Shown here: piece after piece, positions 25,593 through 64,000 of the stretch | Layout of the letters: the number at the start of each line of letters is the position of its first letter | Numbering within the stretch: position 1 is the first letter of the stretch | Origin: Felis catus | Lineage: Eukaryota | Reading direction: 5' to 3' | Assembly (NCBI RefSeq): GCF_018350175.1 | Contig: NC_058386.1 | Location: 122,078,001-122,142,000 of the forward strand | Length of the DNA stretch: 64,000 nt | The notes under the pieces: model-generated | Database searches by the model: none | Told to the model about the DNA's origin: nothing | The model's input: the letters and a program-made list of their open reading frames with translations, nothing else | Program-made: the position numbers and the translations under genes

Positions 25593-25956
25593 ACAGCAGT
25601 CATAATGGTCTGGTTCCACTATGGAGAAAAGTTCCTTTTAAGTTGTCTACAAGGCTCACTATGCCCTGGGACCTAACTAAACTCACTGAATAAAGACACA
25701 TAAAGCCCAGTTGAAGGGATTCACATACCTATTTGACGTTACCTGGCCTCTGAATGTTTAGTCATACCTGCACACTCCATCTAAGGGGGTTGTAGGTTAA
25801 TAGGAAAGCCTAGACTTTCTCATCTCTCCATAATGTCTCTCGAGAAAGAAAGTTGTCCTCGGAAATTAAACCCTTTCAGTAGATCATTCATCTCGGGTCT
25901 ACTAGGAAGGTGCTGAAAAGACAGAAAACATGGGAAACCAAGGACTTTCTACTTAC

Positions 25957-27009: not shown

Positions 27010-29097
27010 AGTCTTACTTGGTAGCCCCCGTTTATTCCTACCTGCCCTCCCCCCCCCATACTTACTGCTTTGGTCTCTTCCAAAATTTCCTGCTGGTTAC
27101 TTGGTACTGCTCAGAAAGGCCCCAACAAAAAGTCCTGTTTTCATGCCCCCTGTGTCAAGTTGTCCTCAGGGTAGGGTCTCAGGCCCCCTTTTATGCTGCC
27201 CCCACACAATTCCCTTTTTGGTCTCTTCCAACTGTTCCTGCTAGTTAGTTGGTCCTGCTCAGATAGGCCCCAACAAAGGGTCCTATTTTCTTGTCCCCTG
27301 GTTCAAGTTGTCCCCAGAGTAGGGTCTCAGTTGATGAGCCCCCCTTTTATTCCTGCCCCCCCCCACTTCCTGCTTTGGCCTCTTCCACGTATTCCTGCTG
27401 GTTAGTTGCTCCTACGCATATAGGCCCCAGCAAAGAGTCCTATTTTCTTCCTCCAGGTCAAGTTGTCCTCAGGGCAGGGTTTCAGTTGGTAGCCCCCCAT
27501 TTATTCCTGATGCCCCCCCACACTCACCGCTTTGGTCTCTTCCAACTGTTCCTGCTGGTTAGTTGCTCCTGCGCATAGACCCCAAAAGAGACTCCGATTT
27601 TCTTGCCCCCTAGGTCAGGTTGTCCCCAGAGTAGGGTCTCAGTTGGTAGCCTCCCCTTTTATTCCTGTCACCCCCCCCCCCCACTTCATGGTTTGATCTC
27701 TTCCATTGTTCGGGCTTGTTAGTTGCTCCTGCTCAGATAGGCCCCAACAAAGAGTCCTGTTTTCGTGCCCCTAGGTCAAGTTGTCCTCAGAATAGGGTTT
27801 CAATCGGTAGCCCCCCATTTATCCCTGTCGCCCTTCCCACAACTTACTGCTTTTGTCTCCTCGAAAGATTCCTGCTGGTTAGTTGTTACTGCTCAGACAG
27901 GTCCCAACAAAGAGTCCTGTTTTCTTGCCCCCTACAATAAGTTGTCCTCAGAGTAGGGTCTCAGTTGGTAGCCCCATTTTATTCCTGGCCCCCCCACCAC
28001 TTCTTGGTTTGATCTCTTCCACTGTTCCTGCTGGTTAGTTGGTCCTGCTCAGATAGGCCCCAACAAAGAGTCCTGTTTAATTGCCCTCTAAGTCAAGTTG
28101 TCCTCAGAGTAGAGTCTCAGTTGGTAGCCCCCCTTTTATTGCTGCACCCCCACACTTCCCACGTTGGTCTCCCCCAATTGCTCCTGCAGGTTAGTTGCTC
28201 CTGCTCACCTAAGCCCCAAGAAAGGGTCCCATTTTCTTGTCTTGTCCCCTAGGTCAAATTGTCCCCAGAGTAGGGCCTCAGTTGCTAGCCCACCCTTTTA
28301 TTCCGGACCCATTAACTAACTTCCTGCTTTGGTCTCTTCCAACTGTCCCACTGGTTAGTTGGTGCTGCTCAGATAGGCCCCAACAAAGGGTCCTGTTTTC
28401 TTGCCCCAGGTCAAATTGTCCTCAGAGTACATTCCTAGTTGGTCGCCCCACTTCTATTTCTGCCCCTCCCCCACTTCCCGCTTTGGTCTGCTCCACTGTT
28501 CCTGCTGGTGAGTTGCTCCTGCTTAGGTAGGCCCCAACAAATAGTCCAATTTTCTTCCCCCTAAGTCAAGTTGTCCTCAGAATACGGTCTCAGTTGGTAG
28601 CCTCCGCTTTTATTCCTACCCCTCCCCACACTTTCTGCTTAGCTAACACCTGGTCCTGCTGGTGAGTTGTTCCTCCTCAGATAGTCCCCAAGAAAGACTC
28701 CTGTTTCCGTGCACCCAGGTCAAGTTGTCCTCAGAATAGGGTTTCAGTTTGTAGCCCCCCCCTTTCATTCCCTCTCCCGCACTTCCCAATTTGTGTCTTC
28801 CAACTATTCCTGCTGGTTAGTTGGTCCTGCTCAGATAGGGCCCAACAAAGAGTCCTCTTTTCTTTCTCCCAGGTCAAGTTGTCATCAGAGTTGGGAGTCA
28901 GTTGGTGGACCCCCTTTTGTTCCTACCACCCACCCCACGCTTCCTGCTTTGGTGTTTTCGAACTGTTCCTGCTGGTTGGTTGGTCCTGCTCAGAAAGTCT
29001 CCAACTGTGAGTCCTATTTTCATTCCCCTAGGTCAACCTGATCTCAGAGTAGGATTTCAGATGGTAGCCTCCTTTCTATTCCTACCACTCCCCCCCA

Positions 29098-29141
<44 letters not shown>

Positions 29142-32100
29142 CCTGGTTTGGTCTATTCCAACTGTTCCTGCTGGTTAGTTGGTCCTGCTCAGATAGTCCC
29201 CAACAATGACTCCTATTTTCTTGCCCACAGGTAAAGTGGCCCTCAGAGTAGGGTTTCAGTTGGTAGCCCCCTTTTATTCCTGCTGCCTTTGCCCCACACT
29301 TCCTGCTTTGCTGTTTTCCAACTCTTCCTGCTTATTAGATAGTACCGCTCAGGCCAGAAGGAAGAGCCCTGGTTTCTTGCCCCGTAGATCACCTTGTCCA
29401 TAGAGTAGGATCTCAGTTGGTGTCCACTTTTGTTCCTGCCTCCCCACTTCCTGCTTTGGTCTCTTCCAACTGTTCCTGCTATTTAGTTGGTCCTTCACAG
29501 ATAGCCCCAAAGAGAGAGTCCTGTTTCTTCCCCCCCCCCCCCCGCCTAGGTCATGTATTCCCCAGAGTATGGTCTCAGTTGGTAGCCCCCCCTTTTATTC
29601 CTGCCTCCCCACATTCTGCTTTGGTCTCTAACAACTGTTCCTGATGGGTAGTTGGTCCTGCTCAGAAAGGCCCCAACAAGCAGTCCTATTTTCTTGTCCC
29701 AGATCAATCTCTCCTCAGAGTAGGGTTTCAGTTGGAAGTACCCCTTTTGTTCCTACCGCCCCCCCCACACTTCATGCTTTGTTCTTTTCCAAGTGTTCCT
29801 GCTTGTTAGTTAGTCCTGATCAGATAGGCCCCAAGAAAAAGTCCTGTTTCTGTGCCCCCAGGGCTAGTTGTTCTCAGAGTGGATTTTCAGTTGGAAGCCC
29901 CCTTTGCATTCCTGCCCAGCACACACTTCCTGCTTTGGTCTCTTCCAACTGTTCCTCTTGGTTAGTTGGTCCTGCTCATGTAGGCCCAAACAAAGATTCC
30001 TCTTTTTTTTGCCCCCTAGGTCAAGTTGTCCTCAGAGTAGAGTCTCAGATGATAGCCCCCCTTTTATTTCTGCCTTCTCCCACTTTCTGCTTTGGTCTCT
30101 TACAACTATTCCTGATGGTTAGTTGGTCCTACTCAGATGGGCCCCAAGAAAGAGTCCTCTTTTCTTGCCCCTGAGGCCCAGTTTCCCTCAGAGAAGGGTT
30201 TCCTTTGGGTGCCCCAGTTTTATTCCTGTTCCACCCAACACTTCCCTAGGTGGTCTCTTCAACTGCTCAAGCTAGTTAGTTGATCCTTCTAAGATAGGCC
30301 CCAGGAAGGAGCCCTGTTTTTTGCCCCCTAGGTCACACTGTCTTCAGAGAAGCATATCAGTAAGTAGCCCCCTTTTTATTCCTACCCCCTCCGCACACTT
30401 TCTGCTTAGCTGTCTAACACCTGTTCCTACTGGTGAGTTGGTCCTCCTCAGATGGTCCCTACAAAGTGTCCTATTTTCTTGCCCCCAAGTCAAGTTGTCC
30501 TCGGAGTAGGGTTTCAGTTGGTAGGCCCTCTTTTATTCCCTCTCCCACACTTCCCGCTTCCCTCCCTTCCAACTATTCCTGCTGCTTAGTTGGTCCTGCG
30601 CAGATACGCCCAACAGAGAGTCCTAATTACTTGCCCCCTAGGTCAAATTGTCCCCAGAGCAAGGTCTTAGTTGTTGGCGTCCCCTTTTATTCCTGCACCC
30701 CCTACTTCCTGCTTTGGTCTCTTCCAACAGTTCATGCTGCTTACTAGGTCCTGCTCAGGTAGACCCCAATAAAGACTCCTATTTTCTTGCCCCCTGGTCA
30801 ATTTGTCCTCAAAGTAGGGTTTCAGTTGGCAGCCCCACTTTTATTCCTGCTGCCTCACCCACACAATGCCTGCTTTGGTCGCTTCCAACTGTTCCCTCTA
30901 GGTAGTTGGTCCTACTCAGAACCCCCACCCCCCCCAAATTCCTGTTTCCTTGCCCCCAGGGCATGTTTTCCTCAGAGGTGTGTTTCCGTTGGTAGTCCCC
31001 CTTTTATTCCTGCCCCCACACACTTCCCCCTTTGGTCTCTTCCAACTACTTTGGTAACTTGGTCCTGCTCAGATAGGCCCCAACAAAGAGTCCTGTTTTC
31101 TTGGCCCCAGGTTACATGGTCCTCAGAGTAGGGCCTTAGTTGGTAGCCCCACTTTAATGCTGCCACCCCGCTTCAAGCTCTTGTCTTCTCCAACTGTTCC
31201 TGCTGATTAGTTGGGCCTTGTTAGATAGGCTGCAGCAAAGAGTCCGGTTTCCTTGCCCCCTAGGCCAAGTTGTCCTCAGAGTAGGGTCTCAGTTTGTAGG
31301 CCCCCTTTTATTCCTACCTCCTCTGCACACTTTCTGCTTAGCTGTCTAACAACTGTTCCTACTGGTGAGCTGGTCCTCCTCAGATAGTCCCAACAAAGAG
31401 TCCCGTTTTCTTACCCCCATGTCAAGTTGTCTTCAGAGTAGCGTTTCAGTTTGTAGCCCCCCTTTTATTCTCTCTCCCCCACTTCCTGCTTTGGTCTCTT
31501 CCACCTATTCCTGCTGGTTAGTTGGTCTTGCTCAGATAAGGCCCAACAAAGAGTCCTCTTTACTTGCCCCCTAGGTCAAGTTGTCCCCAGAGTAAGGTCT
31601 TAGTTGTTAGCCCCCCCCCCCTTTCTTCCTGGGCCAACAGTTCTTGCTAGGTTGGTCCAACTCAGGTAGGCCGCAACAATCAGTCCTATTTTCATGTCCT
31701 TATGTCATGTTGTCCTCAAAGTAGGGTTTCTGTCGGTAGCCCCCTTTTTGTTCCTGCCAACCCCTTACACACACTTCCTCATTTCTTCTCTCGTAATGGT
31801 TCCTGCTGGTGAGTTGGTCCTGCTCATGTAGGCCCGAAACAAGAGTCCTGTTTTCTTGCCCCCTAGGTCAATTTGTCCTCAGAGTAGGGTCTCAGTTGGT
31901 TGCCTCCCTTTTTCTCCTGCCTCCCCACATCCTGCTTTGGTCTCTCACAACTGCTGCTATTGGTTCATTGGTCCTGCTAAGATAGGCCCCAACAAAGAGT
32001 CCTGTTTTCACGCCCCCAGATCAAGTTATCCTCAGAGCAGGGTCTCAGTTGGTAGGCCCTCTTGTATACCTGCCCTCCCCACTTCCTGGTCTCTTCCAAC

Positions 32101-35100
32101 TGCTCCTGCCGGTTAGTTGTTCCTGGTCAGGTAAGCCCCAACAAAGAGTTCTGTTTTCTTGCTCCAGGTCAAATGGTCCTCAGAGTAGGGTCTCAGTTGG
32201 TCGCCCCACTTTTATTGATGCCTCCCCTCACTTCCAGCTTTGATCTGCTCCAAAGGTTCCTGCTGGTTAGTTGGTCCTGTTCAGATAGACTCCAACAAAG
32301 AGTCTTGTTTTCTTGCCCCCATGTCAGTTTGTCCTCAGAGTAGGGTTTCAACTGGGAGCCCCTTTTTATCCCTGCACCCCCTCACACACTTCCAGCTTTG
32401 GTCTCTTCCAACTGTTCCTGCTGGTTAGTTGGTCCTGCTCAGATGGGCCCAAAAAAAGAGTCCTGTTTTTTTTTCCCACTAGGTCAAGTTGATCTCACAG
32501 TAGGTCCTCAGTTCGTAGACCCCCTTTGATTGCCTCCACCAAACACCTGCCGCATTGGTCTGTTCCAACTGTATCTGCTGGTTAGTTGGTTCTTCTCAGA
32601 TGGGCCGCAACAAAGAGTCCATTTCTCATGACCCCTAGATGAAGTTATCCTCAGAGTATGGTCTCTGTTGGTTGTACCCCTTCTATTCATGCCACCCCCC
32701 TCTGCCTGCTTTGGTATGTTCCAACTGTATCTGCTGGTTAGTTGGTTGTCTTCCGATAGGCCCCAAGAAAATGTCCTATTTTCTTGCCCTCTAGGTCAAG
32801 TTTTCTGCAGAGTAGGGTCTCAGTTTGTAGCTTCCCCATTTATTCCTGCCCCCCCCCCCCGCTTCCTCCTTTGGTTTAATCCAATATTTCCTGCTGGTTG
32901 GTTACTCCTGCTCAGATAGGCCCCCAGAAGAGTCCTGTTTTCTTCTTGCCCCAGGTCAAGTTCTCCTCCGAGTAGGGTTTCAGTTTGTGGCCCCCCCTAT
33001 TATTTTCTCCCCCCATGCTTCCCGCTTTGGTCTCTTCCAGCTGGTCCTGCTGGTTAGTTGGTCCTGCTCAGGTAGACACGCACCGGTAGTCCTGGTTTCT
33101 TGCCACCGGGTCAAATTGTGTTCAGGATAGGGTCTCAGATGGTTGCCTTCCCTTTTATTTGTTTCCCCCACTTCCTGCATTGGTCTCTTCAAAATGTTAA
33201 TGCTCGTTAGTTGCTCCGGCACAGATAGGCCCCAACAAAGAGTCCTTTTTTCTTGCCCCCAGGTAAAGTTCTACTCAGAGAATGGTTTCAGGTGGTTGCC
33301 CCCCTTTTATTCCTGCTGCCCCCCTCACAGTTTCTGCTTTGGTCTCTTCCTACTGGTCCTGCTGATTAGTGTTCCTGCTCAGATAGGCCCCAAAAAGAGT
33401 CCTGTTCTCTTGCCCCCAGTTCAAGTTGCCCTCAGAGTAGTTTCTCAGTTGGTAGCCCCACCTTTATTCCTACCGCCAACAAAGTTCCGCCTCGGTCTCC
33501 TCCACGTGCTCCTGCCGGTTAGTTGGTCCTCTTCAAATAGGCCACAACAATGAGTCCTTTTATCTTTCCCCCAGGTCAAGTTGTCCTCAGAGTAGGGTTC
33601 CAGTTGGTAGCCCCCATTTTATTCCAGCCACCCCTCCCAGCACACACTCCCATCTTTGGTCTCCACCAAATATTCCTGCTGGTTAGTTGGTCCTGCGCAT
33701 TTAGGCCCGAGCAAAGAGTCCTGTTTTCTTGTCCTCTAGATCAAGTGGTCCTCAGAGTAGGATCCAGTTGGTAGCCCCTCCCCCCCACTTTCTGCTTTGG
33801 TCTTTTCCAACTGTTCCATCTGGTGAGTTGGGCTTGCTCAGATAAGCCCCAAAAGAAAGTCCTGTTTTCTTGCCCCCAAGTCATGTTGTCCTCAGAGTTG
33901 GTTTTCCGTTGTTAGCTCCCCTTTTATTCATGGTGGCCACACACTTCCCACTTTGGTCTCTTCCAACTGATCCTGCTGGTTAGTTGGTGCTGCTCACGTA
34001 ATGCCCTGATAACACGTCCTGATTTCTTGCTCCCTAGGTCACGTTGTCATCAGAGTAGGTCTCAGTTGGTAGCCCTGCTTTTATTCCCGCACCCCCCCCC
34101 CCACTTTTCCTGCATTGGTCTCTTCCAAATGTTCCTGCTGCTTAGGTGGTCCTGCTCACATAGGCCCCAACTTAGAGTCCTGATTTCTTGTCCCATAAGT
34201 CAAGTTGTCCTCAGAGTCGGGTCTCAGTTGGTTGCTCCCCTTTTATTCCCACCCCCCACACACTTCCCTATTTGGTCTCTTCTAACTGTTCCTTCTAGTT
34301 ACTTGGTCCTGCTCACCTATGTCCCAACACAGACTCCTGTTTTCTTGCCCCCTAGGTTCAGTTGCCCTCAGAGTAGGGTCTCAGTTGGTAGCCCCCCTCC
34401 TCACTCTTGCCCCCCCCCCGCACTTCCTGCTTTGGTCTCGTCCAATTGTTCCTGCTGATGAGTACATCCTGCTCAGATAGGCCCCAACACAGAGTCCTGG
34501 TTTTTTTGCCCCCAAGTCAAGTTGTCCTCAGAATAGAATTGCACGCAGTAGCCCTGCCTTTATTCCTGCACATCCCAACTTCCTGCTTATGTCTGCTCCA
34601 AATGTCCCTGCTGGTTCCTTGCTCTGCTTAGGCCCCAACGAAAAGTCCTATTTTCTTGCCGCCTAGATGAAGCTGTCCCCAAGGTAGGGTCTCAGTTGGT
34701 AGTCCCCCTTTATACTCGCAGCCTCACCCCACACATTTTGCTTTGGTCTTTTCCAAGTATTCCTGCTTGTTAGTTGGTTCTGCTCAGATAGGCCCCAACA
34801 AAAAGTCCTATATTCTTGCTCTCTGGTCAAGGAGTCCTCAGAGTAGGGTTTCACGGGGTACCCGTCTTTTATTCCTGCCTCCTCACTTCCCACTTTGGTC
34901 TCTTCCAAATGTCCCTGCCGGTTAATTGTTCCTGCTCAGATAGGGCGAACAAAGAGTTATGTTTTCATGCCCCCTAGGTCAAGTTATCCTCAGAGTAGTG
35001 TCTGAGTTTGTACCCTCCTTTTATTCTTGTCCTCCCCCAATTCCCACTTTGATCTCTTCCAACAGTTCCTTCTGGTTAATTGGTCCTGCTCTGATAGGCC

Positions 35101-36756
35101 CCGACAAAGACTGATTTTCTTCCCCCAGGTCAATTTGTCCTCAGAGTTGGTTTTCAGTTTGTAGCCCCACTTTCATTCCTGCCACCCCCCAACACACGCA
35201 CGCACGCGCACACACACACAGACACACACACACACACACACACACACATTCCTGGTTTGGTCTCCTCCAAATGTTCCTGATGAGTTGGTTCTGCTCAGAT
35301 AGGCACCACCAAGAGTCCTGTTTTCCTGCCCCCTATGTCGAATTGTCCTCAGAGTAGTGTCTCACTTGGTAGCACCCCTTTTATTCCTGCCCCTCCCCAC
35401 TTCCCGCTTTGGTCTCTTGCAACTGTTCCTGCTGGTTAGTTGGTCCTACTCAGATAGGCCCCAGCAAAGAGTCCTGTTGACTTGCCCCCAGGTCAAGTTG
35501 TCCTCAGAGTAGGGTCTCAGTTGGTAGGCCCCCTTTATTGCTTCCACTTGCTGCTTTGGTCTCTTCCAACTGTTCCTTTTGGTTGGATGGTCCGGCTCAG
35601 ATAGGCCCCAGGAAAGAGTCCTATTTCGATGCCCCAGGTCAAGGTGTCTTCAAAGTAGGGTTTCAGTTTTTAGTCCCCCTTTGTTCCCTTCCCCACTCTT
35701 CCCGCTGTGGTCTCCTCCAACTGTTCCTGCTTCTTAGTTGGTCCTGCTCAGATAGACACGCACCGGTAGTCCTGGTTTCTTGCCACCGGGTCAAATTGTG
35801 TTCAGGATAGGGTCTCAGATGGTTGCCTTCCCTTTTATTCGTTTCCCCCACTTCCTGCATTGGTCTCTTCAAAATGTTAATGCTCGTTAGTTGCTCCGGC
35901 ACAGATAGGCCCCAACAAAGAGTCCTTTTTTCTTGCCCCCAGGTAAAGTTCTACTCAGAGAATGGTTTCAGGTGGTTGCCCCCCTTTTATTCCTGCTGCC
36001 CCCCTCACAGTTTCTGCTTTGGTCTCTTCCTACTGGTCCTGCTGATTAGGTGTTCCTGCTCAGATAGGCCCCAAAAAGAGTCCTGTTCTCTTGCCCCCAG
36101 TTCAAGTTGCCCTCAGAGTAGTTTCTCAGTTGGTAGCCCCCCGTTTATTCCTACCGCCAACAAAGTTCCGCCTCGGTCTCCTCCACGTGCTCCTGCCGGT
36201 TAGTTGGTCCTCTTCAAATAGGCCACGACAATGAGTCCTTTTATCTTTCCCCCAGGTCAAGTTGTCCTCAGAGTAGGGTTCCAGTTGGTAGCCCCATTTT
36301 ATTCCAGCCACCCCTCCCCAGCACACACTCCCATCTTTGGTCTCCACCAAATATTCCTGCTGGTTAGTTGGTCCTGCGCATTTAGGCCCGAGCAAAGAGT
36401 CCTGTTTTCTTGTCCTCTAGATCAAGTGGTCCTCAGAGTAGGATCCCAGTTGGTAGCCCCTCCCCCCCACTTTCTGCTTTGGTCTTTTCCAACTGTTCCA
36501 TCTGGTGAGTTGGGCCTGCTCAGATAAGCCCCAAAAGAAAGTCCTGTTTTCTTGCCCCCAAGTCACGTTGTCCTCAGAGTTGGTTTTCCGTTGTTAGCTC
36601 CCCTTTTATTCATGGTGGCCACACACTTCCCACTTTGGTCTCTTCCAACTGATCCTGCTGGTTAGTTGGTGCTGCTCACGTAATGCCCTGATAACACGTC
36701 CTGATTTCTTGCCCCTAGGTCACGTTGTCATCAGAGTAGGTCTCAGTTCGTAGCCC
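27010..36756. repeat. ~156-bp tandem satellite, array 1 (~60 monomers)
   Basis: Consensus GGTCAAGTTGTCCTCAGAGTAGGGTCTCAGTTGGTAGCCCCCCTTTTATTCCTGCCCCCCCACACTTCCTGCTTTGGTCTCTTCCAACTGTTCCTGCTGGTTAGTTGGTCCTGCTCAGATAGGCCCCAACAAAGAGTCCTGTTTTCTTGCCCCCTA. Monomer starts at ~27301, 27456, 27613, 27774, 27935, 28091, 28252, 28409, 28564 (spacing 155-161). Confidence 0.95.
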
Positions 36757-37465
36757 GCACATTCCACACCTCCTCCTCAGGGGCACAGTTGTTCTCCAGG
36801 AGGACCACCCCCAAGACCAGCACCAGGAAGCTGGCCGTGGGCATGCCCTGCCTACTGCTTAGCATCCCATCACATATCAGGCCAAGGATGGTGACCAGGA
36901 AGAAGGAGTGGTCTCTGGCGTCCGCTTCCTTCACGTCAACTCCAACGGCCAGCTGCAGATACTCGCAGGCTTGGCGGAAGATCACGGAGACGTGGTCCTG
37001 GTCATCTTGGCTGACCGCCGCCAGCATCTCCGCCTGTGTGGTCGGTCGGCTGCTGAGTGCGATACTTGAGAGCAGGAATGCCACCAGGTCAGCCAGCCTC
37101 ATGCCGAATGCATCTGGGAGCGAGGGCTGGGCTCCTTGTGGGGCCCCTCTGGTGCTGGACCCCTCCTCATCGGGGCTGCTGGGGTCCTCATCGGACTGGC
37201 TCCACGGAGCACCTGCCATGTCAGCGGGGGAGGGGCAGGCATTCGGAAGGCTCAGACTGACTCTGTTGAGGGGCCCAGGCTCCCTCTGTCCTCCTTCTGC
37301 ATCCTCGCCAAGAATGGCCACAGGGCCCAGGCCCTGCCCTCTGCCCACTTGAGGTGTCCCAGCCGCCTCCCCCCGCCCACACACACACACACACACCCCG
37401 TGTCTGTGAGACTCCACTGTGGAAGTCTGGCCCGACTCATCCACCCAAATGCCCATCCTGCCCAT
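36743..37465 (-). pseudogene. Truncated/chimeric MAGE-A paralog, copy 1 (open 240-codon frame; 158 aa from the ATG at 37219)
   Basis: Contains about the first half of the MHD (...QAEMLAAVSQDDQDHVSVIFRQACEYLQL...GMPTASFLVLVLGVVLLENNCAPEEEVW), then runs into satellite. Lacks the normal N-terminus and the C-terminal MHD. Confidence 0.8.
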
Positions 37466-38617: not shown

Positions 38618-38623
38618 TTTATT
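38618..38623 (-). terminator. AATAAA polyA signal, MAGE copy 1
   Basis: tttatt ~470 nt downstream of the stop; on the - strand followed by a GT-rich stretch (gatgttcgttcttg). Confidence 0.65.
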
Positions 38624-39094
38624 GCTCCATGCCCTGAAACCATCCGTTTACTGCCAAGGTCTTCACGTTTGCAAGACATCCCTGTCTGTGCCCAGCCCAG
38701 GCACCGCGTTTCCCTTCTGGATCCCGAACGAGGACGGAAGGGTTCCCAGCTCGTTGCACCAAACGGCACAACTCTGACTCTTGAACACCTGTGGCGTGGG
38801 TGCCACTCCCACACTGAGCCCGAAGCTCACGAAACCTTCTATGACAAGGAACAACATCGGAAAACTTCCTCGAGGAAACAAAGATCGATTTCCGAGGCCA
38901 CGTAGACAGAGAACAAGAACCCACCCAAACGCGCGCTTGGCCCCGCTTTCCCCCAAGCCGCCCTGGCCCTCCACTACTCACAACGCCCAGCGCCCGCTCT
39001 GCTCGCACTCGCAGGGGAGAAGTGGCCTGGCTTCGTGCCCCGCAGGAGAAGCTGCTCGACCCCAGGTGGGAACGGGCCCGGCTGCCCCTCGGGC

Positions 39095-40458: not shown

Positions 40459-40479
40459 GATGGTCGCCAAACCCTGAAG

Positions 40480-42800: not shown

Positions 42801-42801
42801 T

Positions 42802-51800: not shown

Positions 51801-54800
51801 GCCCAACAAAGAGTCCTCTTTACTTGCCCCCTAGGTCAAGTTGTCCCCAGAGTAAGGTCTTAGTTGTTAGCCCCCCCCCTTTCTTCCTGGGCCAACAGTT
51901 CTTGCTGGTTAGTTGGTCCTACTCAGGTAGGCCGCAACAATCAGTCCTATTTTCATGTCCTTATGTCATGTTGTCCTCAAAGTAGGGTTTCTGTCGGTAG
52001 CCCCCTTTTTGTTCCTGCCACCCCCTTACACACACTTCCTCATTTCTTCTCTCGTAATGGTTCCTGCTGGTGAGTTGGTCCTGCTCATGTAGGCCCGAAA
52101 CAAGAGTCCTGTTTTCTTGCCCCCTAGGTCAATTTGTCCTCAGAGTAGGGTCTCAGTTGGTTGCCTCCCTTTTTCTCCTGCCTCCCCACATCCTGCTTTG
52201 GTCTCTCACAACTGCTGCTATTGGTTCATTGGTCCTGCTAAGATAGGCCCCAACAAAGAGTCCTGTTTTCACGCCCCCAGATCAAGTTATCCTCAGAGCA
52301 GGGTCTCAGTTGGTAGGCCCTCTTGTATACCTGCCCTCCCCACTTCCTGGTCTCTTCCAACTGCTCCTGCCGGTTAGTTGTTCCTGGTCAGGTAAGCCCC
52401 AACAAAGAGTTCTGTTTTCTTGCTCCAGGTCAAATGGTCCTCAGAGTAGGGTCTCAGTTGGTCGCCCCACTTTTATTGATGCCTCCCCTCACTTCCAGCT
52501 TTGATCTGCTCCAAAGGTGCCTGCTGGTTAGTTGGTCCTGTTCAGATAGACTCCAACAAAGAGTCTTGATTTCTTGACCCCATGTCAGTTTGTCCTCAGA
52601 GTAGGGTTTCAACTGGGAGCCCCTTTTTATCCCTGCACCCTCTCACACACTTCCAGCTTTGGTCTCTTCCAACTGTTCCTGCTGGTTAGTTGGTCCTGCT
52701 CAGATAGGCCCAAAAAAAGAGTCCTGTTTTTTTTTTCCCACTAGGTCAAGTTAATCTCACAGTAGGTCCTCAGTTCGTAGACCCCCTTTGAGTGCCTCCA
52801 CCAAACACCTGCCGCATTGGTCTGTTCCAACTGTATCTGCTGGTTAGTTGGTTCTTCTCAGATGGGCCGCAACAAAGAGTCCATTTCTCATGACCCCTAG
52901 ATGAAGTTATCCTCAGAGTATGGTCTCTGTTGGTTGTACCCCTTCTATTCCTGCCACCCCCCTCTGCCTGCTTTGGTATGTTCCAACTGTATCTGCTGGT
53001 TAGTTGGTTGTCTTCAGATAGGCCCCAAGAAAATGTCCTATTTTCTTGCCCTCTAGGTCAAGTTTTCTGCAGAGTAGGGTCTCAGTTTGTAGCTTCCCCA
53101 TTTATTCCTACCCCCCCCCCCGCTTCCTCCTTTGGTTTAATCCAATATTTCCTGCTGGTTGGTTACTCCTGCTCAGATAGGCCCCCAGAAGAGTCCTGTT
53201 TTCTTCTTGCCCCAGGTCAAGTTCTCCTCCGAGTAGGGTTTCAGTTTGTGGCCCCCCCTATTGTTTTCTCCCCCCATGCTTCCCGCTTTGGTCTCTTCCA
53301 GCTGGTCCTGCTGGTTAGTTGGTCCTGCTCAGGTAGGTCCCAACTAACAGCCCTGTTTCTTGCCCCCAATGTCAACTTGTCTGAAGAACAGGTTCTCAGT
53401 TGGCAGCCTCCCTTTTTTCCTGCCCCCCAATCCTGCTTTGGTCTCTTCCAGCTGTTCCTGTTAGTTAGTTGGTCGTACTCAGATAGGCCGGAACCAACAG
53501 TCCTGTTTTCTTGTCCCCTATATCGAGTTGTCTTCAGAGTAGGGTCTCAGTCGGTGGCCCCCCTTTTATTCCTGCCCCTGAAATTCACACTTTGGCCTCT
53601 TCCAACTGTTCCTGTTAGTGAGCTGGTCCTGCTCAGATAGGCCCCAACAACGAGTCCTGTTTTCTTGGCCCCAGGTTATATGGTCCTGAGAGTTACATGG
53701 TCCTCAGAGTAAGGCCTTAGTTGGTAGCCCCACCTTAACGCTGCCACCCTGCTTCAAGCTTCTGTCTTCTCCAACTGTTCCTGCTGATTAGTTGGGCCTT
53801 GTTAGATAGGCCGCAGCAAAGAGTCCTGTTTCCTTGCCCCCTAGGTCTAGTTGTCCTCAGAGTATGGTCTCAGTTGGTAGCCTCCCCTTTTATTCCTAAC
53901 CCTTCTGCACACGTTCTGCTTGGCTGTCTACCAACTGTTCCTACTGGTGAGCTGGCCCTCCTCAGATAGTCCCAACAAAGAGTCCTGTTTTCTTGATCAA
54001 GATCTGTTTTTCCAGATCAAGATGTCCTCAGAGTAGTGTTTCAGTTTGTAGCCCCCCTTTTATTCTCTCTCCCTCACTTCCCACTTTCATCTCTCCCAAC
54101 TATTCCTGCTGGTTACTTGGTCTTGCTCAGATAGGGCCCAACAAAGAGTCCTCTTTACTTGCCCCCTAGGTCAAGTTGTCCCCAGAGTAAGGTTTTAGTT
54201 GTTAGCCCCCTTTTACTCCTGCACCCACTACTTCCTGCTTTGGTCTCTTCCAACAGTTCCTGCTGCTTAGTTGGTCCTGCTCAGATAGGCCCCAAGGAAG
54301 AGTCCTGTTTTCTTACTCCCGAGGCCAAGTTGTCCTCAGAGTAGGGTCTCAGTTGGTAGCCCTGCTTTTATTCCCGCACCCCCCCCCCCCACTTTTCCTG
54401 CATTGGTCTCTTCCAAATGTTCCTGCTGCTTAGGTGGTCCTGCTCACATAGGCCCCAACTTAGAGTCCTGATTTCTTGTCCCATAAGTCAAGTTGTCCTC
54501 AGAGTCGGGTCTCAGTTGGTTGCTCCCCTTTTATTCCCACCCCCCACACACTTCCCTATTTGGTCTCTTCTAACTGTTCCTTCTAGTTACTTGGTCCTGC
54601 TCACCTATGTCCCAACACAGACTCCTGTTTTCTTGCCCCCTAGGTTCAGTTGCCCTCAGAGTAGGGTCTCAGTTGGTAGCCCCCCTCCTCACTCTTGCCC
54701 CCCCCCGCACTTCCTGCTTTGGTCTCGTCCAATTGTTCCTGCTGATGAGTACATCCTGCTCAGATAGGCCCCAACACAGAGTCCTGGTTTTTTGCCCCCA

Positions 54801-57038
54801 AGTCAAGTTGTCCTCAGAGTAGAATTGCACGCAGTAGCCCTGCCTTTATTCCTGCACATCCCAACTTCCTGCTTATGTCTGCTCCAAATGTCCCTGCTGG
54901 TTCCTTGCTCTGCTTAGGCCCCAACGAAAAGTCCTATTTTCTTGCCGCCTAGATGAAGCTGTCCCCAAGGTAGGGTCTCAGTTGGTAGTCCCCCTTTATA
55001 CTCGCAGCCTCACCCCACACATTTTGCTTTGGTCTTTTCCAAGTATTCCTGCTTGTTAGTTGGTTCTGCTCAGATAGGCCCCAACAAAAAGTCCTATATT
55101 CTTGCTCTCTGGTCAAGGAGTCCTCAGAGTAGGGTTTCACGGGGTACCCGTCTTTTATTCCTGCCTCCTCACTTCCCACTTTGGTCTCTTCCAAATGTCC
55201 CTGCCGGTTAATTGTTCCTGCTCAGATAGGGCGAACAAAGGTTATGTTTTCATGCCCCCTAGGTCAAGTTATCCTCAGAGTAGTGTCTGAGTTTGTACCC
55301 TCCTTTTATTCTTGTCCTCCCCCAATTCCCACTTTGATCTCTTCCAACAGTTCCTTCTGGTTAATTGGTCCTGCTCTGATAGGCCCCGACAAAGACTGAT
55401 TTTCTTCCCCCAGGTCAATTTGTCCTCAGAGTTGGTTTTCAGTTTGTAGCCCCACTTTCATTCCTGCCACCCCCCAACACACGCACGCACGCGCACACAC
55501 ACACAGACACACACACACACACACACACATTCCTGGTTTGGTCTCCTCCAAATGTTCCTGATGAGTTGGTTCTGCTCAGATAGGCACCACCAAGAGTCCT
55601 GTTTTCCTGCCCCCTATGTCGAATTGTCCTCAGAGTAGTGTCTCACTTGGTAGCACCCCTTTTATTCCTGCCCCTCCCCACTTCCCGCTTTGGTCTCTTG
55701 CAACTGTTCCTGCTGGTTAGTTGGTCCTACTCAGATAGGCCCCAGCAAAGAGTCCTGTTGACTTGCCCCCAGGTCAAGTTGTCCTCAGAGTAGGGTCTCA
55801 GTTGGTAGGCCCCCTTTATTGCTTCCACTTGCTGCTTTGGTCTCTTCCAACTGTTCCTTTTGGTTGGATGGTCCGGCTCAGATAGGCCCCAGGAAAGAGT
55901 CCTATTTCGATGCCCCAGGTCAAGGTGTCTTCAAAGTAGGGTTTCAGTTTTTAGTCCCCCTTTGTTCCCTTCCCCACTCTTCCCGCTGTGGTCTCCTCCA
56001 ACTGTTCCTGCTTCTTAGTTGGTCCTGCTCAGATAGACACGCACCGGTAGTCCTGGTTTCTTGCCACCGGGTCAAATTGTGTTCAGGATAGGGTCTCAGA
56101 TGGTTGCCTTCCCTTTTATTCGTTTCCCCCACTTCCTGCATTGGTCTCTTCAAAATGTTAATGCTCGTTAGTTGCTCCGGCACAGATAGGCCCCAACAAA
56201 GAGTCCTTTTTTCTTGCCCCCAGGTAAAGTTCTACTCAGAGAATGGTTTCAGGTGGTTGCCCCCCTTTTATTCCTGCTGCCCCCCTCACAGTTTCTGCTT
56301 TGGTCTCTTCCTACTGGTCCTGCTGATTAGGTGTTCCTGCTCAGATAGGCCCCAAAAAGAGTCCTGTTCTCTTGCCCCCAGTTCAAGTTGCCCTCAGAGT
56401 AGTTTCTCAGTTGGTAGCCCCCCGTTTATTCCTACCGCCAACAAAGTTCCGCCTCGGTCTCCTCCACGTGCTCCTGCCGGTTAGTTGGTCCTCTTCAAAT
56501 AGGCCACGACAATGAGTCCTTTTATCTTTCCCCCAGGTCAAGTTGTCCTCAGAGTAGGGTTCCAGTTGGTAGCCCCCATTTTATTCCAGCCACCCCTCCT
56601 CAGCACACACTCCCATCTTTGGTCTCCACCAAATATTCCTGCTGGTTAGTTGGTCCTGCGCATTTAGGCCCGAGCAAAGAGTCCTGTTTTCTTGTCCTCT
56701 AGATCAAGTGGTCCTCAGAGTAGGATCCCAGTTGGTAGCCCCTCCCCCCCACTTTCTGCTTTGGTCTTTTCCAACTGTTCCATCTGGTGAGTTGGGCCTG
56801 CTCAGATAAGCCCCAAAAGAAAGTCCTGTTTTCTTGCCCCCAAGTCACGTTGTCCTCAGAGTTGGTTTTCCGTTGTTAGCTCCCCTTTTATTCATGGTGG
56901 CCACACACTTCCCACTTTGGTCTCTTCCAACTGATCCTGCTGGTTAGTTGGTGCTGCTCACGTAATGCCCTGATAACACGTCCTGATTTCTTGCCCCTAG
57001 GTCACGTTGTCATCAGAGTAGGTCTCAGTTCGTAGCCC
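42802..57038. repeat. ~156-bp tandem satellite, array 2 (~90 monomers)
   Basis: Same consensus and orientation, lying between the two MAGE cassettes. Confidence 0.95.
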
Positions 57039-57653
57039 GCACATTCCACACCTCCTCCTCAGGGGCACAGTTGTTCTCCAGGAGGACCACCCCCAAGACC
57101 AGCACCAGGAAGCTGGCCGTGGGCATGCCCTGCCTACTGCTTAGCATCCCATCACATATCAGGCCAAGGATGGTGACCAGGAAGAAGGAGTGGTCTCTGG
57201 CGTCCGCTTCCTTCACGTCAACTCCAACGACCAGCTGTAGATACTCGCAGGCTTGGCGGAAGATCACGGAGACGTGGTCCTGGTCATCTTGGCTGACCAC
57301 CGCCAGCATCTCCGCCTGTGTGGTCGGTCGGCTGCTGAGTGCGATACTTGAGAGCAGGAATGCCACCAGGTCAGCCAGCCTCATGCCGAATGCATCTGGG
57401 AGCGAGGGCTGGGCTCCTTGTGGGGCCCCTCTGGTGCTGGACCCCTCCTCATCGGGGCTGCTGGGGTCCTCATCGGACTGGCTCCACGGAGCACCTGCCA
57501 TGTCAGCGGGGGAGGGGCAGGCATTCGGAAGGCTCAGACTGACTCTGTTGAGGGGCCCAGGCTCCCTCTGTCCTCCTTCTGCATCCTCGCCAAGAATGGC
57601 CACAGGGCCCAGGCCCTGCCCTCTGCCCACTTGAGGTGTCCCAGCCGCCTCCC

Positions 57654-57684
<31 letters not shown>

Positions 57685-57753
57685 CCCGTGTCTGTGAGAC
57701 TCCACTGTGGAAGTCTGGCCCGACTCATCCACCCAAATGCCCATCCTGCCCAT
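57025..57753 (-). pseudogene. Truncated/chimeric MAGE-A paralog, copy 2
   Basis: Near-identical to copy 1; 242-codon open frame. Confidence 0.8.
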
Positions 57754-58909
57754 GGCCCTTCACAGAAGGACGCGGGTGCCCGAACTCTGGCAGGTTCCTT
57801 CTGTGTGTCCTAGGGACCTGAGTCCTTCGGTCCGCCCCCCATGTCCCCACCTGGACTCCCTAGCCCGGCCCGTGCCCCTGCCCTTTCTGACCTGGGATCC
57901 TGTCCCTCACCCCAAGGTCCTCGGCTCCCTCAAACCCCCGAGGTACAGTTGAGTGGACACAGCCTGCGGCCGCCCTCTCCAGAAACCCCGGCCTCAGCGG
58001 GGCCTGAGCGCCTGCCTCTACCCAGGGTGGGTGGGTATAGTAGGCCCTACCGCTCTCCCTCAGGTCCAGACACCAGCTCCAGGAAGAGCCTGGGCCCGTC
58101 CCTCTGGGGCCCCGAGTCTACCACCCTTAGCCCCGCTGGGAGAAGGGCTCCGCCTGACCACCCTGCCGGGGTCTCTCGGGCTGCCGGCTGGACTGACCTG
58201 GATTCCGGGATGGGGGGGCCGGCCGTGCTCCCTCACATGTCGACGTGCACGCCTTGCTGCCCGGCCGGGCCCCTTCTCTCTGCCGGCCCGAACCAGGCAT
58301 CCCAGACTGAGGCTCCCACCTCTGTCACCATCCTTTCCGGGATCCTCACCTTGACTCTGACCGGCTCGGGCCGTGCCCCCGCCCTCTACACAGCTGAGTC
58401 TGTGCGCCTCAGATCCAGGCTCTCACTCCCTGACTTCCTGGAGACGGAGGCAGGGAGCACACCGCAGCCACTGTCCCCTCCCCGCTACATTGTGATCAGC
58501 TACCCAGAAGGCATCACACTGACCAGAGACACCAAGCCAGCCTGGCTCAGGATGTCTCCACTGTAGGGCTCCCCCTGGAGCCACACTGCCTCACCCTCCT
58601 TTGATTTGTTCTGCTCCTCTTAGGGGACCCTTCCCTGCCTTCCCACTGGGACTGTCGCTGCTAGACAGTCACCTAGGGGTGGGACGTGTCCCGCCTCTCC
58701 TAGTGTCCTCACTGCCAACACAGGGCCCTTCCGAGAGTGAGCAGAGCTCAGCGAATGTCCGGCCACAAATGTCCCAGTGAGCTGGGGACCTCTGCTCAGA
58801 TCGAGTGTCTCCTCCTTTCTTGGAGACCCAAGCAAAGGCAGGCACACATCTCTATGTCCCTCGTCCAGAATGACAGACGACAAGGGACGAGAAGCAAGAA
58901 CGAACATCT

Positions 58910-58915
58910 TTTATT
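58910..58915 (-). terminator. AATAAA polyA signal, MAGE copy 2
   Basis: Paralogous to 38618. Confidence 0.65.
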
Positions 58916-59386
58916 GCTCCATGCCCTGAAACCATCCGCTTACTGCCAAGGTCTTCACGTTTGCAAGACATCCCTGTCTGTGCCCAGCCCAGGCACCGCG
59001 TTTCCCTTCTGGATCCCGAACGAGGACGGAAGGGTTCCCAGCTCGTTGCACCAAACGGCACAACTCTGACTCTTGAACACCTGTGGCGTGGGTGCCACTC
59101 CCACACTGAGCCCGAAGCTCACGAAACCTTCTATGACAAGGAACAACATCGGAAAACTTCCTCGAGGAAACAAAGATCGATTTCCGAGGCCACGTAGACA
59201 GAGAACAAGAACCCACCCAAACGCGCGCTTGGCCCCGCTTTCCCCCAAGCCGCCCTGGCCCTCCACTACTCACAACGCCCAGCGCCCGCTCTGCTCGCAC
59301 TCGCAGGGGAGAAGTGGCCTGGCTTCGTGCCCCGCAGGAGAAGCTGCTCGACCCCAGGTGGGAACGGGCCCGGCTGCCCCTCGGGC

Positions 59387-60741
59387 TCAGGCCCGCTCTT
59401 CCTCATGGCTCACAGCCTCTTCGGACAGACACGGAGACCCGGGCTGCCTGCTGTTGACCGCGAGGAAGTGCTGCAGCACTTGCACGCCACTGGTTTCTGC
59501 GTGGGCCCTGGGACCCCACAGGAACTCGTAGCGTGCGGGCTCGCTGCCGGGCACCTGCCGGTACTCCAGGTACCCTTCCTGCACCCAGACGTCGGTCAGC
59601 AGCTCCCTGGGCTCCCCATAGAATACGTGCTCCCTGCCGGCATACACCCCCATGACCCCCAGCGCTTCCCACACCGCCTCCTCAGGGGCACGGTCCTCCT
59701 CCAGGAGGATCACCCACAGGACCAGCACCAGGAGGCTGGTCTTGGGCATGCCGTTCCTACCACTCGGCGTCCCATCGCAGCTGAGGCCCAGGATGCTGAC
59801 CAGGACGTAGGAGCCCTCGCGGGGGTCCACTTCCTTCACGTCGACTCCAAAGACCAGCTGCAGATACTCGCAGGCTCGGCGGAAGATCACGGGGAAGCGG
59901 TCCTGGTCATCTTGGCTAACCGCCGCCAGCATCTCCGCCCGTGTGGTCGGCTGCTTGGTGCGATACTTGAGGAGCAGAAGCAGCACCAGGCTGGCCACCT
60001 TCACGCGGAGAGCATCTGGGAGCGAGGCCTGGGCCCCTGCCGGGGCCCCCCAGGTGCTCGACCCCTCCTCATCGGGGCTGCTGGAGCCCTGGTGGGACTG
60101 GCTCCCCGAAGCGCCTGCCATGGCCCTGGGGGAGGGGCAGGAGCTCCGAGGGCTCTGGGGAGGACTCGGGGACCCGGCAGCAGCAGACCCCTCCTCCAGG
60201 GGGACCAGAATGAGGACAGAGCAGGAGGAGGACAGGGAGGAAGAGGAGGAGGAGGAGGAGGAGGGAGATGGGTACCCCCCCTCCTCCTCCTCTGCTTTCT
60301 CCTCCTCCATCTCCACCTCCTCTTCCAACTCCTCCTCTTCCTCCGACTCCACCTCCTCCACCTCCAACTCCACCTCAACTCCACCTCCAACTCCTCCTCT
60401 TCCAACTCCTTTTCCTCGGACTCCACCTCCTCCACCTCCACCTCCACCTCCTCCACCTCAACCTCCACCTCCAAATCCACTTCTTCCACCTCCTCCTCCT
60501 CCACCTTCTCCTCCTTCAACTCCACCTCCTCCACCTCCTCCACCTCCTCCTCCTCCAAATCCACCTCCTCCACCTCCTCCAACTCCACCTCCTCCTTCTT
60601 CAACTCCACCTCCTCCTTCTTCAACTCCACCTCCTCCACCTCCGTGTCCTCAGGCTCTGGCAGCATTGCATCCCATGGCAGCGGGACCTCTCTTGGCTCC
60701 TCCTTAAGCTTGCAGAGCTCACTCCTCTGACGCAGGGGCAT
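59387..60741 (-). CDS. MAGE-A-like protein with poly-Glu/Val tract, copy 2 (one 1-nt frameshift at ~60376 as assembled)
   Basis: MHD translation identical to copy 1. Span 1355 nt = 3n+2; break at cacctc^aactcc, a different site from copy 1. Confidence 0.85.
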
Positions 60742-60762
60742 GATGGTCGCCAAACCCTGAAG

Positions 60763-63052
60763 ACAGAAGAGGGGTGGCTCCTCAGGGGGAGGCCCAGCCC
60801 ACCCAGACCCCGAGCTCCCAGGCCTGAGAGCGGGGCCGCGTGGGGGTTGGGGGCCGAGGGGTCCCCTCTGGGGTGGGATGGGCGAGCCCCCGGCCCCACG
60901 CGCGGAGCACGCACCTCGCCTGGACAACCGACTGGCACGCGGCCTCGCCTCCTCTGCTCTGTGACCTCAGGACTCCTGCCTCAGACCAAGGCCTCAACTG
61001 CAGAGCTCGCAGAGCCCCTGGAAGAGGGAGGGATGGAGGGAGGGAGGGGGGGAAGGAGGGGGCGCCTCAGGGTCTCAGGGTGGGTGCAGACCGCGAGCAC
61101 CGCCCCGGGCCCCCACCCCCCACTGCGGCCAGGAGATTCTGGCCAGGACTCTGGGCGGCCCCGCCCCGGGAGCCCCCACCCCCCACCCCCCATCCAGCCT
61201 GGGCCTGCCCCTTCCGGGCCTCCCCTGACAGCCAGAGCGGACCCGAGCGGCAGGGCAGGCCTGGGCCCTACGCAGGTGTCCTGGGCTGGGAGGCAGCGCC
61301 TCCTCTCTCCCCTGCACCCCGGCCAGGGCCCTGGATCCTGCCTCGGCTGACCGGGGTCCAGCCCCGCACACCAAGGCCCTCCCCTCGCCCAGACCCACCG
61401 CGGGGGCGGCTTTCCGAGGGCGGCCCCGGGGCTGGGGTCCAAGGGGCCTCCGGCCGTCCTCCCGCAGGGCTCTCCCGGGGAGCCCCCGGCCGCTGCCTCC
61501 CACCAGAGCCCTCTCGGCCCGGCGAGGTCCGGGCCAAGGCGGCTGGCGTCGCACGAGGCGACCAAGTCCGGGGAGGCCCGGGGCCGATGGCGGGGGGCTC
61601 ACGTGGCTTCCTTGGGGTCCCTCAGCCCTATCCTCTCGTCCCCATCCGGACTCCCTGGGCGGCCTGGGCCTCGGGCTCTGCCGCCTGACGCCGGCTCCTC
61701 GCGCGCAACCAGCTCTCAGTCGGGCTGGGACCCAGAGCCCGAGTCCGCCCACGCCGCACGCCCTGGTCACAGTCGTCGTGGTCGCGCCACCCTGCGGCCT
61801 CCACCGCCGCCCCCACCGCCGCACTCATTCCCCTCTGGGTCCCGGCTCCCTCGCTCCTCCCTCTGGGCCTCACCTCGAAGCCCACGAGGCTCTGCGCCCT
61901 TCCCGCGCCTGACGGGATTCGAGGCGCGGCCGGAAGACGCCGAGGCCCCCTCGCCACGCCCCGCCCCGCCAGTCTCTTGAGACCCGGATGCGGAAGTCCA
62001 GACACCGCGCGGGGCCTCATTCCCACTAGGCGCTTCCCTAGGCTGCCGCTAGGGGTCGCCTTCCGGGCCGGGGCCGGGGCCTGGGTTCTGGGGGGCCAGA
62101 GTCCCTCCCTCGGTGTTCCCTCCGTGGCCTCCTGCACCCCGGGGATGGCCTGTGCGCGTGGCCGCTGACGATGGGAACTCGTGCCCCTCAGACCGGGGTC
62201 CGAAGGTCTCTGGGACGCACCGCCCAGGCTCAGTGACGGGGCGCCCGCCACCTCTGGCCACCCGATGCAGTGGCTCCCCGGGCCTGCGGCACGGACTGAC
62301 TTCGTAGCTCTGGGCTGGGGTGGACCTGGTCTCCTGACAGCACCTGGGCCCTCCTCCCGTCTGCCCACCGGAGCGGCTGCTCCCGACAGACAGCGGGTCC
62401 TCGGTTCTCCCCAGCTCACCCATCCGACCCCCACTCCCCCGTCCAGGTGATCCGAGACCCGGATGCCCAAGTCCAGCCTCGCCCAGTGTCCCCATCCCTC
62501 CCGGGGGCCTGCGCGGACTGACTCTGTTGTGGGGTCCAGGCTCCTTTGCCTGCAGGTCCCTCTGTTCCTCATTAGGAATCGCCCCGGGACACGGGCCCTG
62601 CCCTCTGCCCACCTGAGGTGTCCCAGCCACCCCCCGCCCCCTGCGCCTCCTCCGGTGTCTCTGAGACCCGGCTGCGGAAGTCTGGCCCGACTCTCCTCCG
62701 CGAGTCCCCATGCCTCCCAAGGGCCCTTCTCAGAAGGCCTGAGGTCTTGAACTTTGGGACGTCCCCTCTGTCCTGGGGACCCGAGTCCCTCAGTCCTCCC
62801 TCTGACCCCCACCTGGACACCGTGGCCCCGTCCTGTATCCCTGCCCTTTCCTGACCTAGGATCCTGTCCCTCACCCCAAGGTCCTCAGCTTCCTCAGATC
62901 CCTGAGGCACAGTTGAGTGGACGGGGCCTGCGGCCACCCTCTACACGTACCCCGGCACCGCGGCCCAGGCTGATCTCCTGTCCCCGGGGCGGGATGGGCC
63001 CTGCGGATCTCCATGAAGTCCCGACACCTGCTGCAGAGGAGCCTGGGCCCGA
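60763..63052 (-). promoter_or_regulatory. CpG-rich MAGE 5' region, copy 2
   Basis: Paralogous to 40480-42800. Confidence 0.65.
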
Positions 63053-64000
63053 CCCCCTATTATTCCTGCCGCCCCGCCACACACACTTCCGACTTTTCTC
63101 TCTTCCAACTGTTCCTGTTGGTTACTTGGTCCTGCTCAGATAGGCCTGAACAAAGCCTCCTGTTTTCTTGCTCCTAGGACAAGTTGTCCTCAGAGGAGGG
63201 TCTCAGTTGGTAGCCCCCCTTCTATTCCTCCCCCCTCTCTTCTTGCTTTGGTCTCTTCTAGCTGTTCTTGCTGGTTGGTTGGTTCTGCTCCAACAGGGCC
63301 CCAACAAAGTGTTCTATTTTCTTGACCCCATGTCAAGTTGTCCTCAGAGTACTGTTGCAGTTGGTAGCCCCCCCCATTTATTCCTGCCGCACCCCACACA
63401 CACACATTTCTTGCTTTGGTCTCTTCCAACTGTAATCACTGGTTTGTTGGTCATGCTCAGATATGTCCCAGCAAAGAGTCCTGTTGCCTTGTCCCCAACA
63501 CAAGTTGTCTTCAGAGTTGGGTTTAAGTTTGTAGGCCCCCTTTTATTGCTCCCCCCCCCCACTTCTCACTTTGGTCTCTTTCATCTCTTCCTGCTGGTTA
63601 GTTGGCCCTGCTCAGATAGGCTGCACCATGATTCCTGTTTTCTTTCCCCCCAGGTCAAGTTGTCTCCAGAGGAGGGTCCAAGTTGGTAGCCTCCTCTTTG
63701 ATTTCTGCCCCCCACCCACACACACTTTCTGCTTGGGTCTCTTCCAAATGTTCCTGCTTGTTGATTGGTCTTTCTCAGATAGGCCCCAATAAAAAATCCT
63801 GTTTTTTTTGCGCCCAGGACAAGTTGTCCTCTGAGTTGGGGTTCAGTTGGTAGTACCCCTTTTATTCCTGCCCCCCACATACTTTCCGCTTTGGTCTCTT
63901 CCATCTGTCCTGCTGGTTACTTGGTCCTGCTTATATAGCCCTCAACAAAGAGTCCTGTTTTCTTGCCTCCAGGTCAAGTTGTCCTCAGACTAGGGTTTCA
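63053..64000. repeat. ~156-bp tandem satellite, array 3 (runs off the window)
   Basis: Same consensus; starts at the same junction as array 2. Confidence 0.95.

Follow-up and report, generated by a model that had tools for sequence, protein, structure and literature searches.

In primates, the GAGE, CT47 and CT45 arrays consist of directly repeated units, several kb to tens of kb long, with a gene of a cancer-testis family in each, and their copies are more than 99% alike, homogenized by gene conversion and clustered by species (PMC13616518, PMC5687341). On human Xq28, the gene order MAGEA9B-HSFX2 ... HSFX1-MAGEA9 brings a MAGE and an HSF-type family together (PMC3467283). Here, we describe a stretch of 64,000 nucleotides of Felis catus (assembly GCF_018350175.1, contig NC_058386.1, positions 122,078,001 to 122,142,000 of the forward strand; hereafter the window), in which a 6-kb cassette, carrying one complete MAGE-A9-like gene and one truncated MAGE, is embedded in a tandem repeat of ~155 bp upstream of an HSFX/HSFY-family gene. 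In unit organization, similarity of the copies and clustering by species, the cat locus resembles the primate arrays. Unlike them, over half of its unit is an older 155-bp repeat that hosts an inserted gene segment, and the length of the unit varies (20.26 and 14.18 kb), with two units and the start of a third in the window. We consider it probable that this is an ampliconic locus of the felid X chromosome, in which the cassette was inserted into the 155-bp repeat and was then multiplied and homogenized by exchange within it.

The repeat extends over 27003-64000, with ~160 monomers in all on the same strand, and is broken twice by the GC-rich cassette (36757-42802 and 57039-63052). The three resulting satellite segments, delimited by register to the monomer consensus, are A (27003-36756, ~63 monomers), B (42803-57038, ~92 monomers) and C (63053-64000); Tandem Repeats Finder (TRF) placed the ~155-bp arrays at 27046-36756, 43161-57038 and 63053-63997. 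The original prediction, made from the letters of the window, had described a ~156-bp satellite surrounding two-gene 6-kb MAGE cassettes, and this anatomy is borne out by the TRF arrays and by two cassettes with two MAGE open reading frames (ORFs) each. Monomers were obtained by cutting the array at a conserved 17-mer, and 119 clean ones yielded a 155-bp consensus. In a search of the whole window, all matches to this anchor were on the plus strand and none fell beyond 27-64 kb; two further matches, inside the MAGE genes, are at chance level. The pairwise identity of the 119 monomers averages 74.8% (standard deviation 4.4) and is equal at every lag from 1 to 12, pairs above 93% being confined to a few large segmental copies. 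Neither homogenized monomers nor a multi-monomer period of higher identity was found over these lags, which sets the array apart from a homogeneous satellite. A higher-order repeat was also rejected: TRF lists periods of 311-327 bp, yet identity is flat across lags. Since identity does not depend on distance, the array is old, heterogeneous and unhomogenized, without higher-order repeat.

Neither the cassette nor the left 27 kb yielded anything related to the monomer profile (nhmmer; best E = 0.016), and an origin of the monomer in a MAGE gene or in nearby DNA was rejected on this ground. An Rfam scan of the whole window gave no match in array or cassette, and a literature search retrieved no published description of this locus or monomer. 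Read on the gene strand, the monomer consensus has an AATAAA just past its poly-G tract, at 36605-36610 and in every monomer. The first of these motifs stands ~135 nt beyond the stop of the truncated MAGE, and transcripts entering the array would meet a poly(A) signal every 155 bp. Read on the minus strand, the monomer (AACTAACCA..CAG motif, ETS-like CAGGAAGT, then AATAAAAG) may resemble the part of a gammaretroviral long terminal repeat from CAAT box to TATA.

Both cassettes (6,046 and 6,014 bp, minus strand) interrupt the poly-C tract of a single monomer and preserve its register. In each case, position 89 of the consensus is the last of the left flank and position 88 the first of the right flank, and the joined flanks form one continuous monomer. 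A chance phase match within two bases between two unrelated junctions would be expected in about 3% of cases. Because a single monomer is interrupted in register, the cassette appears to have been inserted into a pre-existing array. The inserted segment starts in the middle of a homology domain and carries a CpG-rich region upstream of the complete gene (in cassette 1, 40459-42802 on the minus strand, GC 70-75%, CpG observed/expected ~0.6), of which 41593-41769 matches the first 59 amino acids of a Felis catus UniProt model. The carried upstream region and the mid-domain start led us to reject a retrocopy origin; they point instead to the copying of a stretch of DNA, taken from a pair of MAGE genes, into the existing array. 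A 30-bp block of GACGCC-type hexamers (41655-41684), inside the stretch with the 59-residue match, is present in copy 1 and absent from copy 2. Pfam gave no match for the ORFs in the GC-rich parts of the cassettes and at 18-21 kb, which look like noise from base composition.

The complete gene of each cassette contains a MAGE homology domain (Pfam PF01454, 7.1e-14; 52.5 bits against a cut-off of 25), beside the shorter MAGE ORF on the same minus strand; MAGE_N reaches 24 bits, below its cut-off of 26.6. The nearest named relatives are felid proteins called 'melanoma-associated antigen 9-like', and the homology domain is the same in both copies and 100% identical to that of Felis catus P0125, P0128 and P0008. 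The coding exon runs contiguously from ATG to stop on the minus strand over 1364 nt in copy 1 (39095-40458, ATG at 40458) and 1355 nt in copy 2 (59387-60741, ATG at 60741), yet both lengths are 2 mod 3. What had been called a full acidic MAGE is therefore a complete coding exon with its homology domain, but it is out of frame in both copies. In copy 1, the frame is shifted by an extra stretch of 14 bp (40141-40154) within the Glu/Val-rich repeat (39988-40360, minus strand, CCTCCT-type on the plus strand; TRF and translations). In copy 2, nucleotide alignment places the lesion, a 1-bp loss, at 60375/60376, also inside the Glu/Val repeat, where the two copies show in-frame length differences as well. 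These +14-bp and -1-bp lesions may be real decay or consensus errors in the purine-rich repeat. The broken frames were searched as separate pieces and never joined.

As assembled, only a 244-amino-acid product from an internal ATG could carry the homology domain, and the cat RefSeq models, with 244 amino acids, begin at an internal ATG. Public data hold four in-frame versions of 423-448 amino acids with the same domain, one of them a Felis catus UniProt entry, in which the repeat counts 93-118 residues with about 60% Glu and 20% Val. The cat MAGE-A9-like genes thus carry annotations of 244 amino acids, whereas the longer form with the N-terminal Glu/Val repeat can be read through in some copies and is interrupted in others. 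A relative from the spotted hyena Crocuta crocuta (P0007) carries a Lys/Glu/Val-rich repeat at the N-terminal site of the cat Glu/Val repeat. Because the hyena insert occupies the same place, a charged insert there predates Felidae, its composition having changed since.

The original prediction of a truncated MAGE in each unit is confirmed by two minus-strand ORFs that end in satellite. ORF 1 (36743-37465) has 240 amino acids, the last four codons and the stop being satellite-derived, and ORF 2 (57025-57753) has 242. At the DNA level, the truncated MAGE aligns with the complete gene at 82% over 490 bp, whereupon the alignment jumps to the upstream region of the complete gene. The second MAGE looks like a dead fragment that ends in satellite sequence. 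Orthology of the truncated MAGE with intact hyena 'MAGEA8-like' genes was rejected, as the tree puts the truncated copies on a long separate branch. The exact 240-amino-acid ORF recurs on five contigs of Logan, where each sequencing run is assembled by itself, and the junction is in this way supported outside the present assembly. Public variants of the truncated ORF have 233-241 amino acids and vary in the called start and in single residues, and one of them lacks a stop. An (AC)n run in the ORF (37397 / 57679), read as Val-Cys repeats, accounts for a 6-bp difference between the copies. In two Felis catus UniProt entries, P0008 and P0140, an N-terminal part that belongs to the truncated MAGE is followed by the C-terminal part of the complete one. 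The counterparts of these two parts in the window lie at 57100-57744 and 39098-39853 on the minus strand, so that the joining needs either a splice from unit to unit, ~17.6 kb downstream across the satellite, or a chimeric copy at another place in the array.

The architecture had been proposed to be lineage-specific; this does not hold at the level of the cat lineages sampled. The satellite-derived tail ...EEEVWNVRATN-stop also ends proteins of Lynx rufus (P0154) and Neofelis nebulosa (P0159), the latter listed under two accession numbers. The lineage of Neofelis was the first to split among living cats, roughly 11 million years ago. As the junction tail is common to Felis, Lynx and Neofelis, the insertion would predate the split of the living cat lineages. 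Moreover, two or more copies occur in at least six felid genera, and in Felis, Acinonyx, Leopardus, Prionailurus and Neofelis a single chromosome-size contig bears complete copies that are distinct though nearly identical. In the tree, the copies group by species with a support of 91-97 in the Shimodaira-Hasegawa-like approximate likelihood ratio test (SH-aLRT), a pattern that suggests concerted evolution or repeated duplication. In public data, the truncated ORF and the full gene with the Felis-type domain each occur in six or more variants, which hints at more copies or alleles.

Within the window, the two units are nearly identical over 13.2 kb: 30045-43265 (6.7 kb of satellite, the cassette and ~3 monomers) pairs with 50304-63510 at an offset of about 20,264. 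One self-alignment pairs 29.6-43.7 kb with 49.9-64.0 kb at 95%, an average that masks a finer structure. Identity of 99-100% is limited to the two blocks and drops abruptly beyond them to 75-80%, the background between any two monomers. As ampliconic, we regard at least two copies with at least 99% identity over at least 10 kb; the two blocks, with 65 substitutions in 12.0 kb when the replaced patch of 1 kb described below is excluded, are 99.46% identical. Tandem X ampliconic copies of primates differ by 0.49% on average, with a similar species-wise pattern (PMC13616518), and the divergence of the cat block (0.54%, substitutions only) falls in the range reported there.

This divergence is distributed very unevenly. 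It amounts to 3.7% in the first 355 bp at the left edge and 1.1% at 31.4-32.9 kb, falls to 0.08% at 34100-36756 and to 0 over the homology domain (38700-40000), and rises again to 0.8% at 41100-42802 (chi-square p = 1.6e-17). In addition, the patch 33011-34000 of copy 1, which takes the place of 53300-54300 of copy 2, is a 97-99% copy of 35691-36682 and not the partner of copy 2. All block edges lie inside the satellite, with flanks that are collinear and in monomer register across each edge, as would be expected of homologous exchange between monomers. A single duplication would give even divergence; the observed mosaic of 0-3.7% points instead to repeated gene conversion. Together with the identity rising towards the centre, the replaced patch and the differing block ends, it suggests several exchange events for which the satellite is the likely recombination substrate.

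A similar picture could result from one or two recent duplications, with no exchange afterwards, if hot spots of mutation in the satellite and errors of the assembly consensus had made the divergence uneven, and many of the differences are indeed 1-bp indels in C runs, on a low overall divergence. Nevertheless, counts restricted to substitutions still differ about 40-fold between segments, and the 1-kb copied patch speaks for several separate events, as does the differing end point of a second block. All sampled felids, moreover, have species-specific near-identical copies around a shared junction, and we regard such a recent origin as unlikely.

The spacing of the units bears on a second alternative, a regular gene-bearing macrosatellite of many head-to-tail ~20.3-kb units, of which the window would contain the first two. 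The offset between units 1 and 2 stays within 20,250-20,288 bp along the whole block. Two ENA contigs that encode cassette proteins measure 20,249 and 20,281 bp, equal to this offset, as a collapsed tandem unit would be. The shorter contig carries the exact ORF of copy 2 together with a truncated-MAGE variant, and the longer one a MAGE of pantherine type; it is suggestive that both could represent tandem units collapsed to contigs of period length, one of them from a big cat. However, near-identity covers only 13.2 of the 20.3 kb, and the sequences that follow cassettes 1 and 2 are 76-78% identical. Neither the left 3 kb of satellite (27003-30045) nor the spacer of about 6-7 kb (43266-49469) has a near-identical partner in the window, where they match at the background of 75-80%.

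The start of the third unit departs from the 20.3-kb spacing as well. Over its last ~350 bp, the window becomes increasingly similar to 49470-49818, from the background level through 90 and 95% to 100%. This agrees with the earlier expectation of a third unit, which very probably follows the end of the window. The third block starts at 63650, in segment C, 835 bp further left than the block of units 1 and 2, and its offset is 14,182, not 20,264. Because of this difference, the spacing is irregular; with a partnerless spacer and offsets that differ, the units are not of constant length, and the locus is not a regular macrosatellite. The macrosatellite alternative thus seems distinctly unlikely. 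Of the two near-identical ~20.3-kb tandem units of the original prediction, the units and their offset remain, whereas near-identity is limited to 13.2 kb and the next offset is shorter. Likewise, the suggestion that satellite recombination drives MAGE copy number in a macrosatellite gains from the edges in satellite, the preserved register, the variable spacing and the mosaic divergence, all consistent with the satellite as substrate, while the regular unit has to be given up.

Starting from what was directly observed, namely the anatomy, the in-register junctions, the mosaic identity, the junction shared with other felids and the species-wise clustering, we infer an exchange mechanism, and expression in testis, for the ampliconic locus proposed here. 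An old, heterogeneous 155-bp tandem repeat upstream of HSFX would have come first. A single insertion would then have placed a 6-kb segment into the poly-C tract of one monomer, before the split of the living cat lineages. This segment could have been cut from a MAGE-A gene pair, with a whole MAGE-A9-like gene, its CpG-rich upstream region and the 5' part of a second MAGE. Thereafter, the monomers may have undergone unequal exchange in register and gene conversion, by which the cassette was multiplied with varying satellite flanks, and the same exchange would keep the copies of each species alike by concerted evolution. In the window, the outcome would be two units and the start of a third, with spacings of 20.26 and 14.18 kb.

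Several points weigh against this history. The species-wise clustering is equally expected from recent independent duplications in each species, and some of the multiple accession numbers may be isoforms rather than separate loci. The 7-kb spacer is unlike the prediction of a single simple unequal crossover and calls for additional events. Evidence for the duplication, the copy number and both frameshifts comes from this assembly, with indirect support from protein databases, and divergence times and X linkage are taken from general knowledge and contig sizes.

Dependence on one assembly also raises the question of an artefact, in which a single cassette would have been falsely doubled from two haplotypes or by mis-joining of satellite reads. 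The repeat-rich context is hard to assemble, the central divergence of 0.1-0.5% is in the allelic range, and the indels of both MAGE copies are typical of consensus errors. Yet positions 1-64000 contain no N, the copies differ by up to 3.7% at their edge and by the replaced 1-kb patch, and each has its own unique flanking satellite. Furthermore, the truncated ORF and the full gene are each public in at least six variants, and for several felids, assembled independently of one another, RefSeq shows copies that are distinct but nearly identical on the same X contig. An artefact is therefore very unlikely in our opinion. It is more improbable still that the satellite, beyond serving as a substrate, is a co-opted element whose motif-dense monomers, with their poly(A) signals on the gene strand, drive germline expression of the MAGE cassettes and HSFX and set their copy number, with unit number and the intactness of the Glu/Val-repeat MAGE then affecting male fertility or hybrid sterility in cats.

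The position of the array directly upstream of HSFX, as originally predicted, is confirmed by an ORF at 25888-26454 on the minus strand, the first coding exon of an HSFX/HSFY-family gene (Pfam HSF_DNA-bind, 4.5e-17), whose ATG at 26454 is 549 bp from the satellite. All MAGE and HSF genes of the window are on the minus strand, the MAGE cassettes lying upstream of the HSF exon. The nearest Atlas clusters of this exon are HSFY-like (score 0.97), and it is 63% identical over 91 amino acids to the HSF part of a fused MAGE/HSF model from sheep. Within the scope of this first exon, the gene has the marks of HSFX: an HSF-type DNA-binding domain, a probable X linkage and a place next to MAGEA9. We infer X linkage of the cat locus from identical or near-identical proteins on felid contigs of 124-129 Mb, from the place of the window more than 115 Mb into its own sequence and from a MAGEA9-HSFX synteny as on human Xq28.

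Further to the left, matches at 2862-2934, 2887-3161, 3373-3557, 14703-14975 and 15097-15156 comprise a tRNA-like match (Rfam tRNA, 41.9 bits) and several repeat copies. Copies of 60-185 nt with tRNA-derived heads correspond to short interspersed nuclear elements of carnivore type, as would be expected in a felid. The region 18000-22000 is GC-rich (up to 69%, CpG observed/expected 0.54), with a C-rich 162-bp repeat in 2.3 copies at 18394-18763, and may be the CpG island of a neighbouring gene.

Human copies of MAGEA9 and HSFX form a large inverted duplication. The cat copies, by comparison, are direct repeats inside a satellite, HSFX is not duplicated in the window, and the cat MAGE gene has its Glu/Val repeat of 93-118 residues. 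The same two families are adjacent in both species (human gene order in PMC3467283), and in both the locus is duplicated; given this adjacency, the cat locus is probably orthologous to the human MAGEA9/MAGEA9B-HSFX1/HSFX2 region. As the human gene order also places both families together, and a sheep model fuses them, the MAGE-HSFX neighbourhood is ancestral and its synteny conserved. In cattle, the same neighbourhood has proved prone to the amplification of testis genes (PMC7706723); there it is HSFX that is amplified, whereas the cat amplifies the neighbouring MAGE cassette and has HSFX once in the window. DXZ4 of the cat (PMC8662614) is an X-linked, fast-evolving large tandem repeat in Felidae, as the MAGE locus probably is too, but its units are regular, it binds CTCF and codes for no protein, and effects on hybrid sterility have been mapped to it. 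For the MAGE locus, a part in germline conflict or hybrid fertility, as raised in the original prediction, would be hypothetical.

The comparison can be extended to a Y-linked gene. Like the cat locus, the human TSPY array (DYZ5) holds a testis gene in direct tandem units of ~20 kb (~20.4 kb in TSPY) that are kept alike by exchange within the array; unlike it, TSPY lies on the Y, its units are regular and numerous, and they are not built on a short-monomer satellite. The TSPY array is mentioned alongside the primate X ampliconic arrays (PMC13616518). Set among these systems, the cat locus is a fresh architecture of a well-known kind of locus, and overturns nothing known about ampliconic genes. 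It records how an X-linked cancer-testis family multiplied, in one datable insertion with a junction shared across Felidae and in repeated in-register exchanges that left blocks with differing end points and a mosaic of divergence. It could thus serve as a convenient natural system in which to measure unequal exchange and gene conversion in a carnivore, beside the amplicons of primates, mouse and cattle.

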